Notes: generated by a model from the sequence alone, not told the origin. Shown: positions 13,179 through 26,692, numbered from the stretch's first letter. The stretch is 64,000 nt of DNA from Dimorphilus gyrociliatus (GCA_904063045.1 CAJFCJ010000009.1:228942-292941); one strand, 5' to 3'. Numbers and translations are program-made.

Positions 13179-16100
13179 ATGAAGTCAAAGAAAGATAAAA
13201 AAGGTACATTTAAATTTAATAAATGATGAATTATAAGTAAATCTTCAAATTATACTATTACATCAAGCCGAAATATGTCATACTTTTATGAAACCCTCGT
13301 AATTTGCTAAATATTTAAGATATCTGTAAAAAGAAAAGCGTCTGCTATTTTACAAAATCAAATAGTTTGATTTTTTCATTTTTAAAATTGTTAGAAATAA
13401 ACCAAACTGATGTTTATAGTCAGAAACCTACTACCAGGATTTTCACTAACTAAAATAATAAGGAAAAATATCTAAGCCGTTAGATCCATATTTAATACAA
13501 AATGTAATATGGGGCTAGAAATATCAGCATGCAGTATATAATAGGATTAATGATTAATTACTTTTTTTGTATTTAAAACAAAAGATATTAAACCCTGTAG
13601 TATAATTCAGAAAACAGAGAAGCTTTTGTCAATTGGATTTTGTATCTGAGACATTTACAAGAGGTTGTCTAACATTAAAATAAATTAAGGAAATTGACTT
13701 GATCTATACACTAAAATATAAATTCTTTTCATGCAATTATTTTCATATTAAATAGAAAATTTTTGTAATTAAAAACCTACAGAATAGAACAAACAAAAAT
13801 ATACTAATCTGCATATAATACGTCCTTAAATATAATAACATAATATTTTTGCTAATATTCTTCATTTAAATTTAATCATTCCAATTAAAGCTCAAGATCC
13901 AACTTTAGCCAAAAAACGACAGGAAAAACAAATAAAAACCTTGTTAAATCCCAAGAGTGCTAGATTGATTGTTAGAAACTTACCCTTTAAGGTAATTCAA
14001 TGAGTAATACTTGAACTGGAAAAAGAGCATAATTATTTTTGTTTTAGTGTGAAGAAGAAAGTCTGCAAAACGTCTTTTCACCATATGGAGAAATTACTGA
14101 CATCACATTACCCAAAAAAGAAGGTTGCTTTTGAATTTAAATAATACAATGCCTGTAAGAATATCTCTTATATATCTTTTATTGCTATTTAGATGGAAAA
14201 TCGAAAGGATTCGGTTTTGTTCAATTTTCTGACTTAAAAGAAGCTGCTGAAGCTATAAAAGCTTTGAACGGACAAGAACTAAACGGTAAAATTATCTCTT
14301 TTTTAATTATCAATAGGCTATTATTCTTACGATTCATTTATATTCCAGGCAGACCCATTGCTGTAGATTTCTCTCTATCTAAAAGTCGTTTCGAAAAATT
14401 AAATAAGAGACAACCAGTTGGTAATTTAACAGGTAATTTCAGAGAAAACAAGTGTTACAATTATCAAATAATTCAGAGAAGGTAAATTACTATTGATTCA
14501 ATGCTTTATAATAGATGAACCTGAGAAAGAGGAAGAGATTAGGGAGGAGGAAAATAAAGATGATAACGATGATTATATAAGCAAAGATGATGTTGATAAT
14601 GAAGATATAAGTGAAGAGGATGATGATGATGAAGATGCTGATGATTCCGAAAGTACGGATAAGGACGATGATGAAAGTGATGTTGATGAAGAGAGTGATA
14701 AAGAGGACGACGATTCAGATGGTTTGTGCTCTTGATTTCAATTGGTTTACATAAAATAACTCCAGTAAATATTTAACAGATAAAACCCATGCTAATATGT
14801 CGGATAAAAAAAATGATGACGCAAAAGATGGTAAAACAGTTTTTGTTCGGTGAGCATATCTGTAATTTCTGAATTTATTATCTTACATATTACATTTGCC
14901 ACATTATAGTAATATGTCACTGGACTCTGATGAAGCAGAATTGAAGGAACTCTTTACACATTTTGGTACAGTCGAATATTGTCGAATTGTAGTCGATAAA
15001 GCCACACAGCACAGCAGAGGTTTTTATCCAATTTAAGTAGAATTTTGCAAAATATCTAACATAGTTTTTGTCAATCATTCCAGGAATGGCATTCATTAAA
15101 TTTAAAGATAAATTATCAGCTGATGAGTGTGTTCGAATTGCGAATGATAAATCAGATCAAGGAGGTATATTCCTCGATGACAAAGAACTATCTGTAATCG
15201 TAGCACTTACAAGAAATGATACGGAGAAGCTTAAGTCGGACATGCAAAAAAAAAATGCAAAGGTTGATAAAAGAAATTTATGGCTTGCTAGAGAAGGTCT
15301 CATTAGAGCTGGTACGAAAGATGCTGAGGGTATTACACCAGCCGATTTACAGAAGAGAGCCAGAATAGAACAGATAAAAAGAGTAAAACTGAAAGATCCC
15401 AATGTATTCGTGTCAACAACTCGTTTATGTATCCATAATATACCTGTCCCCGTGACTGATAAGAAGCTTAAAACAATTGTTCTAAAAGCAATTGATGAGA
15501 AAAAAGCTCGAATTAATGAATGCCGTATAATGAGAGATCTTAATAAATTGAATAGTAAGGGAATTGGGCGCTCTCGTGGTTACGCTTTTGTAAATTTTAT
15601 AGAGCACGAGCATGCCTTATTAGCTTTGAGAACCCTAAATAACAATCCAGATATATTTGGTGATTCCAAGGTAAAATGTGAAAAATGCAAAAATGAATTG
15701 ATTTCTTTAAAACTATTTATCAAATACAGCGTCCGATCGTTGAATTCTCATTGGAAAATAAAGCAAAACTACAAGCCCGGGAAGAGAGACAGCAAAGAGC
15801 ACTGGCCAAACAGACTGAAAAGCAAACAAAAAAGAAAACGAAAAACTTTAAAACAGATACATCAAAGACGCCTGTTGAAAAGCAAAAAGTTAAGGGACTA
15901 GTGTTACCTAAACGTTCAGGAGCTAAAGTTAGGCATAAGCCCAGACAAACTGAGACCACTAAGGGAAAAAAGACTAAGAAAGAGAAAAGAAAAAGAGCTT
16001 TTGCTGAGGATGCTCAATTGGTAAGGCTTCTCACTCATTTAAAACAAATTATTGTCAAATTTAATAATCAAACAAACTGCTATTTTTCAGTTGGGGACCG

Positions 16101-18336: not shown

Positions 18337-21300
18337 ATGGCGTTCATCAAGAAATTTGGTAACAAAGAGCTAGATGATAAAATAGAAGAATGGATCAGAT
18401 GGGATAAGGTGATAATCTGTCTTTAAAAAAAGCGATTTAAATGTGATGCAATACGATAAACGTAAAATGTTCCACGTAATAGCGGGATGACACGTGCGAT
18501 GAAATTAAGAAACTCGTCCAGAATGACAATGAAAATGAGCTAAATAATAGGTTATTAAAAAGAATGGCATTTGGTACTGCTGGTCTTAGAGCAAGAATGG
18601 GTGCAGGATATTCGATGATGAACGACTTGACAATAATCCAGACAACTCAAGGATTTGCAAAATACATGTTAACAGTAACACCTAATGTAAGAAAGAATGG
18701 AGTAGTAATTGGCTTTGATGGCCGACATAATAGTCATCGGTATTATTATTAGATTAATTATTCTAATGAAAAAAAATTAAAATTAATCATTTGTCATCTA
18801 AAGGTTCGCCCAAAGAGTTGCCAGAGTATTGACGTTACAAAATATCAAAGTCTATACAATGTCCCATACATGTCCAACACCTTTCGTCGTAAATATTCTT
18901 AGCAAATGCACTTTTATTTTAAAAGTAATAAAATCTCATTCCAGCCATATACTGTTCTTTCGAAAGGCTGCGATTGGGGAATAATGGTAACTGCATCACA
19001 CAATCCAAAGGATGATAACGGCTATAAAGTGTATTATTCTAATGGTGCTCAAGTAAAAGAAACTAATTTTACTTTTTGTTCGTGAGGAAACTTTAATCTA
19101 GTATTTGCCTTTTATAGATAATAGAACCTCATGATGAATATATCAGTAGGAGCATTCTTGAAAATTTGGAACCGTGGGAAAATGTTTGGCAGTTAGATGA
19201 AACAGACAATAATCTTTGTACCGACGTATATAAAGAAACTTTCACCAATTATATTAAGGATTTAGAGGGCTTGTGCCATTTTAAAGACGAAAATAGCAAA
19301 ACAGATGTTAAATTTACATACACAGCCATGCATGGTGTTGGATATCCAGCAATTCAGAAAGCCTTTGAGATTTTTAATTTGCCTAAACCAATCCCTGTGA
19401 TAGAACAAGTCGAAGTTGATCCCGAATTTACAACTGTCCAATTCCCAAATCCAGAAGAGGGAAAAAGCGCACTGGTAAGTTCATTATTGAGAAATGCAGA
19501 AAAAGAATTGATTAAATTTGGGAATTTTTTTTAAAAAATAGAATTTGGCGATGAAAACTGCTGATGAAAACGATTGTAAAGTGATTTTAGCGAATGATCC
19601 GGACGCGGATAGATTAGCCCTTGCGGAAAAGCAGGCAAAGTAAGCTCAGTTTCCTTTTTAGGCTTTCGAATGATTTCGAACGGCTGACGATCTTTGCTTT
19701 AACAAAAACGAAATGCTATAATGATTGTTACTTGCTTGTCAAATAATTTGCTTTGATACAGTGGCGAATGGAAGTGTTTTTCCGGAAATGAATTGGGTAG
19801 TTTATATTTGTGGTGGCTCTCGACTCGACTAGATATTACTAATACTAGCCGCGGTGAGAATAGATTCTTTGAAAAAAAAAAAAAGCAAAAAGCATGGTTA
19901 CCGCCGTTCAATTCATCGCCATTTAACATTTTATTAATAACCTATAATAAAGTTATATGGATCCAAGTTCTTATTTATATAGTAGCCATTTATGATAAAA
20001 TTTATCCATGCGTTGCAGCGGTTCGTGGCATGTGTTTTCCGGCAATGAAATTGGAGCTCTTCTAGGGCATTGGACTTGGAAAATGTATTCAAGGAAAAAT
20101 TCCAATACCAATTATGGTAAGGAAAACTTTTCAAAAAGCTATGAATATTTTTAAAAATACAAACATAAAATAAAAACAAATTAATTAACAAAATAGAATA
20201 AGAAGATTAACTTAGAGTAATAAATAAATAAATAAAATAGAATCTCATTGTCAAGAGAACACATGCCGTTAAAGCCTTGAGAAAAATATTAATAATAATA
20301 TTTACTCATTAGGCGATGTCTACGCAATTGCTAGTACAGTGTCTTCCCAAATTATTGGAAGTATTGCCCGAGTAGAAAATTTTAAATTTGAAGTAAGCTC
20401 ATTAATATATAAAATATCATTTTTTCATTATTTTCTCTTAAATGTAGGAGACACTTACTGGATTCAAGTGGATGGGTAATAAAGCTCACGAACTACGAAA
20501 AAAAGGAAAAACTGTATTATTCGCTTTTGAGGAAGCCATTGGTAAAGTTTTATTTATTGTATTAAATATGCTTATATTAAGCTTATTAATAAAAACTAAT
20601 CCCTTGAAAGTAAAAATATTTTTAAATTGTTTGGCATACAAACAGGATTTATGTGCAGTGATAAAGTACTTGATAAAGACGGTATTAGTGCTGCGGTTGT
20701 CCTGGCGGAGATGATTATTCACCTTGCAAAAGAGAATCTTAATTGTAAGCAACAATTAGAAAAGATATATGAGAAGTACGTGAATTGTTTCATTAATACA
20801 AAACTGTATCATTTATATAATAATTTAATAATTTTTCAGATACGGTCAACATATATCTAGAAATTCATACTTTATTTGTCATGATGAAGCTACTATTAAT
20901 AAATTATTTAACGATATAAGAAATTTTGACGGTAAAGGAAAATATCCTTCGCATTGTGGCCGTTTCGAAATCAAATACATTAGAGATTTGACAACTGGAT
21001 ATGATAATAGTCAACCTGATAATAAACCTGTAAGATTGAATACAATTGAATTATAATCATCAGCTTATCTTTTAAACTTTCGTAAACAGATCCTCCCTGT
21101 TTCTGCGTCAAGTCAAATGTTAACCTTCACCTTTAGTAATGGATGCATAGCAACACTGAGAACCAGCGGAACAGAACCCAAGATAAAATATTATACTGAA
21201 TATTGCGCCGAACCAGGGTAAATATATCTATAAATTTGTATCTTTGATATACGAACAAAAAGAAACCTTTATTTTTTTTATAAATAGGCGTAGTCGTGAA

Positions 21301-21393
21301 GAGGTTAGCAATGAACTGAACGAGATGATAGAAGCTATTATCGAACACTTTTATAGACCTAAAGAGAATCACTTGACACCTCGACCTAATTAG
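18337..21393 (+). CDS. PGM2: Phosphoglucomutase-2 / phosphopentomutase (PGM2/PGM2L1 family) with a duplicated internal exon
   Basis: [10 protein letters not shown], phosphoserine motif [15 protein letters not shown], metal loop [36 protein letters not shown]. Two homologous exons at 19762-19853 and 20019-20116. Confidence 0.96.
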
Positions 21394-24568: not shown

Positions 24569-25171
24569 TTTTAAACTGCCGCCCCTCTACTGTGCTTAGT
24601 AACCGAGCCGATCGAACTGTTCACTTTTCAATAAGTAATCATAGGCTTCTTTTCCTATTTTATATCGAACAGTCGTTAATCCTGAATTGTAAAACACTAT
24701 TGTAATTCTGCATGACGATGAATTAATTATCGAACACAGTTACGTCATATTTTATATTCCATTAATATAAAAAAAAGTGTAAACTTTAAGAAATTTGTAT
24801 TAAAAACAAAGAGAAATTAAAGCTTCTATGACTCTAACTAAGTAAATATATACTTTCTATATTACGTATTGGAACGGTGGAATTGCTTCCGGGCTAAAAC
24901 TTACGTTCCATATTTAACGAATGTTTACAATGTAAACCAACAATTAAATAGACCTTTCTAAGGTTTTTGTTTCATTACAAACATTTAGTCTTTATAGATC
25001 TCTTAATAAAGACATTAAAATAGAACAAACTTTAACAAATAATTAATAAATATGAATATTCAATAATTATTTCAAATTGAAGTAAAACAGTTCAATTAAT
25101 TATTTATATTAAATAATTAATGACGTCATCAAATGAAAATATCTTTTTAATTTTATCTAAAAATTGAAATT

Positions 25172-25888
25172 ATGTTATTATTTATAAGAATAGTTTATTG
25201 GTTGGATATGATAAATACTATTTTGGCCATTATTACTCAATATCGATTTATATTACAAAATAGAACGTCATTTAGTGAAAGTAATGATTATGCATCCTCA
25301 ATTGAGTTTGATGATTACGTCGATAATATAGAGGAAATTAATCATCAACGTTTGAAAAAGCGAACATCCTCTTTGTCTGGTAGTAGTAATACTTTTGAGA
25401 AGGTAGGCCTAAATGACGATGGTTCCTATATTGATGATATAGATGGAGAAATAAATTCTAATTCGCATAGAGATAGCGTGAAAGCAAAATCAATTCATCA
25501 TTCGAATCAGAAGAGAACTTTTAGTAATCAAATTCGTTGTTTCGTCTGTCATAACGGAGAAGAGAGTTGCCAATTTTTAGAACATCCCCAAAGTAGATTT
25601 AATTTGCAAAGAGAGTTTAAAACTTGTCTTGGAGTTCAATGCTTCGTTAAACGTTTTATACCCTTAATAAATGAGGAAAAACCAATAATTGATCGAGGTT
25701 GCTACTCTGAAAGAAGATTTTCAACTCTAAAATGTCATAGTACTGATACAGTAAGACCATTTGATAAATCTGAATTATACACTTGCGTATGCGAAACGGA
25801 TTTTTGTAACAGTTCAACCCAGTTGAGAACTTCTACTGCCGTATCAATATTTTTATCATTACTAACAAAAGAATATCTAAGAGGCTAA
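25172..25888 (+). CDS. Ly6/uPAR (three-finger, Quiver/Sleepless-like) protein with long N-terminal extension
   Basis: IRCFVC..C..C....C..RGC..C..C.C.TDFCN cysteine pattern followed by a hydrophobic, GPI-signal-like tail. The true start may be on an upstream exon. Confidence 0.7.
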   Translation: MLLFIRIVYWLDMINTILAIITQYRFILQNRTSFSESNDYASSIEFDDYVDNIEEINHQRLKKRTSSLSGSSNTFEKVGLNDDGSYIDDIDGEINSNSHRDSVKAKSIHHSNQKRTFSNQIRCFVCHNGEESCQFLEHPQSRFNLQREFKTCLGVQCFVKRFIPLINEEKPIIDRGCYSERRFSTLKCHSTDTVRPFDKSELYTCVCETDFCNSSTQLRTSTAVSIFLSLLTKEYLRG

Positions 25889-26065
25889 TTGTCTGTTTAT
25901 CCCATCGTGAATAGAAAGTCAAAAATAGAATGCTTCACGTAAGCAAATTGCAATAAAAAGTACTTTTCTTTAAGATATTGGAATCGTAAATCTAAAAAAG
26001 GAGCGTAAGGTCACGTTCACTTAGATAAAAGGGCCGACACAACAGGAGAAACAAGTGATAATAAT

Positions 26066-26692
26066 ATGGAGCAACTCGTACGTGGCCACGATGATATGGA
26101 TATTTCTCAATCATTTAATATTGAGTTGAGATTCTCTGATGAAGACTCTAGCAAAAGGAAACATATCGTTCTCTCGAGATTGTGCCTTTTAATCTACAAC
26201 GACTCTTCTATGAGCATTCTAGAACGGAAATTATATTTGTACAATGTTCAATCGATTGAAAACTGCGGCTGTTTTGTAAGATTGACTTTTAATGATTGCC
26301 ACCTTCAGCTTCAATTGGAAAATTTCAAATTGAACGAAAACTTATGTAACGATATTCAAAGAGCTATGCTCGTCTGTAAAAAGGAATGGAAACTGCAACA
26401 GGAATTAAGATCTGCCCAATTTAAAATGAACGTTGAAAAAAATATTAAATCTAAATTAATGGCCAATCAAAAGGCGAATGAACCAAATATTCAAACATTC
26501 TTAAAGGCACCTGAAAAAGCTAAAGTTCAAACTTGGCCCTGGAACGCAAAAAAATATCGCCGAAAGGGATACGTTGGTTCCAGATTGCGTCAATTTGACG
26601 AATGTTTTCAAGAGATTAAAGATAAAGTTATTTGGAGTCCACTCGATTGCGGATTTATGGAAGAACACGAGTACGAATATATGTCCTCTTAG
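26066..26692 (+). CDS. Hypothetical protein (208 aa, possible PH-like N-terminal domain)
   Basis: Uninterrupted 627-bp ORF with normal coding composition in a 70% AT background; no family confidently recognised. Confidence 0.6.
   Translation: MEQLVRGHDDMDISQSFNIELRFSDEDSSKRKHIVLSRLCLLIYNDSSMSILERKLYLYNVQSIENCGCFVRLTFNDCHLQLQLENFKLNENLCNDIQRAMLVCKKEWKLQQELRSAQFKMNVEKNIKSKLMANQKANEPNIQTFLKAPEKAKVQTWPWNAKKYRRKGYVGSRLRQFDECFQEIKDKVIWSPLDCGFMEEHEYEYMSS

Follow-up and report, generated by a model that had tools for sequence, protein, structure and literature searches.

Layout of the PGM2-type gene and its tandem exon pair

We examined a stretch of 64,000 nucleotides (nt) from one strand of the genome of the annelid Dimorphilus gyrociliatus (GCA_904063045.1, CAJFCJ010000009.1:228942-292941), hereafter called the window. 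It contains a PGM2-type gene (phosphoglucomutase-2 / phosphopentomutase), in which one internal exon is present as two adjacent copies, exon A and exon B. The gene lies on the + strand at 18337-21393, from the start codon ATG at 18337 to the stop codon TAG at 21391-21393, and is interrupted by short introns. It carries the four active-site motifs of the family, as defined in PMC5570346, namely the TASHNP phosphoserine, DPDADR metal-binding, FAFEE sugar-binding and SGTEP phosphate-binding loops. Exon pieces, including those of the exons flanking A and B, matched the Pfam domains PGM_PMM_I, II and IV, with domains I and II above the cut-off in the Pfam scan and domain IV slightly under it on one exon. 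Full-length relatives carry the names phosphoglucomutase-2 or phosphopentomutase, and the nearest relatives are animal PGM2 proteins at 50-58% identity. Family motifs, Pfam domains and the names of the relatives thus place the gene in the PGM2 / phosphopentomutase subgroup.

The pair is framed by two constitutive exons on the + strand. The upstream one (19541-19639), delimited by an RNA joint from 19473 to 19541 and by its translation, contains DPDADR and provides the donor common to A and B (GCAAA/GTAAGC at 19639), with 2 nt carried into the following codon. The downstream one (20313-20392) is supported by RNA joints from 20116 to 20313 and from 20392 to 20448, and its translation opens with Gly. 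Between them lie exon A, the minor and atypical copy (19762-19853, + strand, 92 nt, ACAG/TGGC to CGCG/GTGAGA, 30 residues), and exon B, the canonical default copy (20019-20116, + strand, 98 nt, GCAG/CGGT to TATG/GTAAGG, 32 residues). Exon A is defined by its splice sites, its frame and an acceptor joint in RNA, and exon B by RNA joints on both sides. An earlier note on this DNA had given the coordinates, AG/GT sites and phases of both exons exactly: in each, 2 bases brought over from the upstream exon begin the first codon, and 1 base passes on to the next exon. The alternative segment begins 10 residues past the metal-binding loop, and coincides with none of the four active-site loops.

The lengths of 92 and 98 nt are both 2 mod 3, so that only messages with exactly one of the two exons keep the frame. 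Their sum, 190, is 1 mod 3, and a message with A followed by B reads into a TAG at 20063-20065; omission of both also shifts the frame. Exclusivity, where it applies, rests on the reading frame and not on an intron too short to be spliced, because the intron between A and B measures 165 nt and introns of 55 nt are spliced in this genome. The two peptides are identical at 10 of their first 18 residues, a tblastn search against the whole window paired them with E = 2e-4, and their alignment score was reached by none of 5000 shuffled sequences. By these comparisons exons A and B are homologous beyond chance and are a tandem duplicate. The claim of a frame-enforced tandem pair, in which both or neither exon breaks the frame, is therefore borne out by lengths, shuffles and tblastn alike. 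No third copy was found by tblastn in the window.

The frame of exon A also stays open through the entire A-B intron (19757-20062, 102 codons, ending at the TAG at 20063), which is unusual for AT-rich intron DNA. A meaning for this 102-codon frame was considered and rejected, as the frame is lost in the related species described below, where the intron measures 176 nt; the open stretch is probably due to chance, judging from the two sequences.

Use of exons A and B in RNA

RNA evidence came from Logan contigs, which show the presence of forms and not their amounts. Contig depths were not used to rank isoforms, since depths of 205.6 and 184.7 merge into 209.2 at the exon A node. In run X8, contigs cover the whole gene and are cleanly spliced at all other introns. 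In one X8 contig 19639 is spliced to the acceptor of A at 19762, and in another to the acceptor of B at 20019. The latter joint is also found in run X2, and exon B is seen spliced onward (20116 to 20313) in runs X8, X2 and X3. Thus the A acceptor is used in RNA, and B, which appears in all runs, is the default form.

Three of the junctions that the earlier note had proposed to look for are therefore present, but the fourth, from the A donor, is not: in no contig of any run is 19853 joined to 20313 or to 20019. As for its claim of mutually exclusive use, the acceptor joints of A and B are both seen, but two finished, mutually exclusive messages are not demonstrated. We read A and B as probably a productive, regulated, mutually exclusive exon pair, although this reading carries appreciable doubt, and a productive A isoform as likely but unproven.

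Several observations weigh against this reading, those on RNA being grouped here and the others set beside the results to which they belong. The first is the missing A-donor joint, which is weak negative evidence because contigs drop rare forms. Moreover, an X8 contig (19762-20048) begins at the first base of A and continues, with the A-B intron unspliced, into B, and a finished message containing A alone is unproven. Finally, no called protein was found to contain the exon A reading frame in a word search that reaches only proteins of 56-178 amino acids (aa), so that a full-length A isoform would be beyond its reach.

The same observations bring in a second explanation, which we think unlikely but which keeps a real share of our credence. 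Exon A would yield no product but act in regulation, as a poison exon or as part of a detained intron: the A-B intron would be kept or B added, translation would meet the stop at 20063, the message would be degraded or stay in the nucleus, and the level of PGM2 would be set in this way, with no second enzyme being made. A premature stop is indeed predicted both for A plus B and for a retained A-B intron. The only continuation of A in X8 is the unspliced read-through contig, a second unspliced X8 contig covers 19610-19791, and 19640-20018 is the sole intronic part of the gene under contig cover in that run; the absence of the A donor joint from the contigs agrees with this explanation as well. 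It fits less well with the exon itself. The A donor is a good one (G/GTGAGA) and is retained in the related species, the length of A preserves the frame exactly when A is substituted for B, and the frame that stays open across the A-B intron in the worm is lost in the relative.

Two loose ends were seen in X8, at 20045 and 20170, where parts of contigs fit the locus only from those positions on and are preceded in each case by 255 unrelated letters. Either chimeric contigs or matches to an AT-rich repeat may account for them.

Conservation and predicted folding of the exon module

The earlier note had asked for the exon pair in sister species, and both exons are found intact in a related species. 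This relative is represented by four contigs of genomic DNA, all alike in sequence (L001-L004, Logan runs SRR23372216, SRR23372228, SRR23372229 and SRR23372232), which were reached by a word search with the 119-residue exon at 19118-19474. Its DNA is about 72% identical across the PGM2 locus, and exons A and B both retain their AG/GT sites and open frame. The six constitutive exons are 77-83% identical in nucleotides (80% pooled). Of the four other introns, three are 51-57% identical and one 69%. Identity is 94.6% in exon A (87/92, binomial p = 7e-5 against the constitutive exons), 87.8% in exon B and 69-74% in the three introns next to them. In the 30-nt acceptor region of exon A (19732-19761, + strand), 28 nt are identical. 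Two intron blocks on the + strand are still more constrained: E4 (19883-19918), 36 nt at 100% identity, and E6 (20242-20268), 27 nt identical save for one inserted base, which falls in the internal loop of the helix S2 described below. Altogether, the constrained island spans about 600 nt.

We then counted codons with a synonymous change among those with an unchanged amino acid. The tally was 99/243 in the constitutive exons, 2/27 in exon A (p = 5e-4) and 0/24 in exon B (p = 9e-6); for A and B together, the deficit relative to the constitutive exons gives a combined Fisher p of 3e-8. Exon B nevertheless has 8 non-synonymous codon changes beside its 0 synonymous ones, and the amino-acid changes in A and B are mostly near the exon ends. 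Since synonymous change is nearly absent while amino-acid changes do occur, the constraint acts on the RNA. Regulated alternative exons usually show this pattern.

The substitution counts also have to be entered on the other side of the balance. Exon A differs between the species by 3 non-synonymous and 2 synonymous changes, and a constraint at the RNA level means that selection on the A peptide is not proven by conservation alone. Constraint on nucleotides, with more non-synonymous than synonymous changes in A, is what the non-productive element would also predict, since highly conserved poison exons typically look like this.

Conservation bears most directly on a third explanation, that exon A is a decaying pseudo-exon and the use of its acceptor mere splicing noise. 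The earlier note had itself held that an exon with no reads and no conservation would be of this kind; we found instead an acceptor joint and strong conservation. The unseen A donor joint and the atypical second half of A, described below, speak in its favour. Yet 87 of 92 nt are identical, against 80% in constitutive exons and about 51-57% in most other introns (p = 7e-5), and neither the splice sites nor the frame is broken in either species. Conservation of A thus brings the pseudo-exon close to refutation.

A fourth explanation would assign the conserved island to something else than the splicing of PGM2, for example to an antisense gene or to a small RNA borne by the intron, exon A being conserved as a by-product. 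A gene caller does list a 190-aa minus-strand product over the relative's A and B (L001, 819-1391), and E4 and E6 are 100% conserved, apart from the base inserted in E6. With the standard code, however, the minus-strand frames are interrupted, leaving 76 + 85 aa in the worm and 83 + 94 aa in the relative. The antisense gene was therefore rejected, its frames being interrupted in both species, and the 190-aa product, whose frame is interrupted under code 11, seems to be an artefact due to the genetic code that the caller used. As to a small RNA, Rfam gave no match at E <= 1 in the module, and the complementarity of E6 to exon B itself suggests a role in cis. We consider this fourth explanation very improbable.

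Structure was predicted on the stretch 19630-20330, and duplexes were scored against 300 shuffled sequences. The most prominent element is a predicted helix, S2, in which the start of exon B pairs with E6, located 200 nt further downstream. Its 5' arm (20026-20048, + strand) lies inside exon B, in the codons for WHVFSGNE, its 3' arm is in E6, and it comprises 13 + 8 base pairs in the fold. S2 appears in both the minimum-energy and the centroid folds, and when a shorter stretch is folded (z = -4.0) the centroid includes it too. The duplex prediction gives 22 pairs between 20026-20048 and 20245-20268, at -31.9 kcal/mol (z = -5.8, 0/300 shuffles as good). In the relative all 22 pairs are unchanged, at -31.9 kcal/mol and z = -6.8. 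The donor of B would be enclosed by this helix.

A further helix, S1, is possible according to the duplex predictions. Its arms would be E1, a conserved intron element (19661-19700, + strand), and the E4 region (19889-19920), and it would bracket exon A (-26.0 kcal/mol, z = -3.0, 4/300 shuffles as good). In the relative 25 of the 28 pairs are retained, but the duplex is no better than shuffles there (z = -1.0). This, together with the comparison of two species only, which yields no covariation for either helix, counts against a structural switch. Pairing between exon A and E4 was a third candidate, present in the minimum-energy fold; it was discarded as no better than shuffles in either species. 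Duplex tests in both species found no common docking site pairing alternately with a selector beside each exon: E6 pairs only with exon B, whereas the best partner of E4 is the upstream intron, its pairing with A or B falling short of significance.

Finally, the module contains two GCAUG motifs, both conserved, one in E4 (19892-19896, 39 nt past the A donor) and one in exon B, inside S2 (20028-20032), with a chance expectation of about 0.3 in the stretch. A Rbfox-type regulator acting through them would be no more than a lead.

Under the favoured reading of a productive exclusive pair, these elements could work together as follows. One PGM2 exon was duplicated in tandem in the worm's lineage, and the copies now form a regulated alternative-exon module, in which the A acceptor competes with that of B for the single upstream donor. 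Formation of S2 would mask B and bring the A donor near the next acceptor, favouring A, while the weaker helix S1 across exon A would act in reverse. Messages with A only would exist in certain cells or stages, and would yield an enzyme altered after FSGNE; messages with both exons or with a retained intron would be degraded, presumably through nonsense-mediated decay.

Origin of the pair and its meaning for the enzyme

We compared the segment with about 200 animal PGM2 proteins, collected by a profile-free search with the 119-residue exon and by a word search with a full-length relative. A B-like segment is found in all of them, and an A-like segment in none of these proteins. In Owenia fusiformis (L011) the segment forms an exon of its own, present in single copy and bounded by introns at the same positions as in the worm, which indicates that the duplication is lineage-specific and arose within annelids. 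The duplication itself predates the split of the worm and its relative, as read from the two loci. One copy is present in each of the loci L010 and L007. In L005 and L006 one copy is visible, and a second is possible there as these contigs stop 140 nt past the exon.

Intron positions around the segment vary among animals. In Owenia and the worm it stands alone as an exon, whereas it is fused to the upstream exon in L007 (8895-9065), and is fused to the downstream exon in L010 (5157-5330). Two entries in other species look like gene-model problems at the PGM2 locus: a 407-aa PGM2 model (P0140) that does not have the A/B segment (AEK/VSTVSS), and a 1214-aa one (P0040) in which two separate stretches match the query exon. 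The Lineus isoforms X1 and X2 were set aside since they differ only at the N-terminus.

Exon A had been described as divergent but open. Open it is, but divergent only in its second half, for its first 18 residues fit the animal consensus as well as those of B do. All the near-invariant residues of this part are retained (G1, W3, F6, G8, N9, E10, G12, L14, W17 and W18), and at four positions (E2, K4, L11 and W17) A has the majority residue where B does not. Such agreement with the family argues that A has been preserved as a coding exon. It also speaks against the poison exon, because the intact near-invariant residues in the first 18 codons, and the four positions nearer to the consensus than in B, would be unexpected in a sequence from which no working protein had ever been made.

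The second half is another matter. Tyr15-Leu16 stand where 183 relatives have Leu or Phe followed by a small residue, Ser20 occupies an otherwise hydrophobic position, Leu23 and Asp24 are found where aromatic and basic residues prevail, and the loop is two residues shorter. The residues of A at positions 15, 16 and 20 are unseen among the 183 relatives, which belongs with the observations that count against a productive A isoform, and these three positions are also what a poison exon might show. The odd residues of exon A are identical in the related species.

If the A isoform is translated, it would retain the FSGNE core, with Tyr-Leu replacing the Leu/Phe-small pair. The change would probably affect packing or domain movement rather than the catalytic loops. 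Solved structures are only distant ones (1TUO and 2F7L); the matching residue of Pseudomonas PMM/PGM, which we take to be Arg262, presumably contacts the hinge to domain 4.

An effect on the balance between mutase and glucose-1,6-bisphosphate synthase activities, which the earlier note had suggested by analogy with vertebrate PGM2 and PGM2L1, found no support. The features reported to separate these two enzymes are the Ser after FAFEE in the sugar loop and the phosphate-binding loop (PMC5570346). In the worm both loops lie in constitutive exons, FAFEEAIG is common to both isoforms, and vertebrate PGM2 and PGM2L1 both have the canonical B-like segment. Since the discriminating motifs lie in constitutive exons, a switch from mutase to synthase is unsupported. 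The worm and the vertebrates are alike in that two products differing in sequence come from one ancestral PGM2; they differ in that the whole gene was duplicated in vertebrates, and that the distinguishing motifs fall outside the worm's alternative segment. We regard as improbable the most elaborate version of events, in which a structural RNA switch (S2, perhaps with a protein bound at the GCAUG past exon A) would be coupled to a working A enzyme with changed domain movement and an altered balance of mutase, pentomutase and bisphosphate-synthase activities, so that splicing of one invertebrate gene would achieve what vertebrates obtain through PGM2 and PGM2L1.

Exons 9 and 10 of PKM are tandem-duplicated, mutually exclusive homologous exons. 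The worm pair resembles PKM-type pairs in that adjacent homologous exons of near-equal length and same phase occur in a metabolic enzyme, one of them being the default, and in that exons and flanking introns are more conserved than constitutive exons. It differs in three respects: the worm segment is no known regulatory or ligand site, exclusivity is imposed by the frame, and a finished message with A alone is the unproven step noted above.

RNA pairing between docking and selector sites controls exclusive exons in Dscam exon 6, 14-3-3 xi and MRP1. As in these genes, conserved intron blocks with long-range complementarity surround the variable exons of the worm, and a helix could loop out one of them. 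Unlike them, the worm has no single alternating docking site, the strong helix has one arm inside exon B, and covariation is not available from two species.

Within the same enzyme superfamily, PGM1 has a duplicated alternative first exon (PMC4494069). Here too homologous exons serve as alternatives, but the gene is PGM1 and not PGM2, and the exons encode the N-terminus rather than the stretch past the metal-binding loop. The alternative first exons of PGM1 each have their own promoter. The earlier note knew of no description of exclusive exons in PGM2, and our literature search agrees: it found nothing on them, nor on a switch between alternative exons within the catalytic body of this enzyme, and the PGM1 case was all that it brought up. 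The PGM2 pair is an additional example of the known class of duplicated alternative exons, and not a new class.

PGM2-type enzymes produce pentose and hexose phosphates, as well as the cofactor glucose-1,6-bisphosphate. Should the A isoform prove real, the worm would hold a natural pair of enzymes differing only in some 30 residues after the metal-binding loop, a handy probe of the effect of this segment on domain movement and substrate choice. The locus also joins frame-enforced exclusivity with a strong, conserved exon-intron helix prediction, in an annelid with very short introns; being so compact, at about 700 nt, it would be a tractable model for the control of splicing by RNA structure outside arthropods and vertebrates.

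Around the gene, we noted a long Lys-rich open frame upstream of PGM2 (15065-16100, + strand), and downstream of it, at 25151-26689 on the + strand, two long open stretches of 245 and 227 codons.

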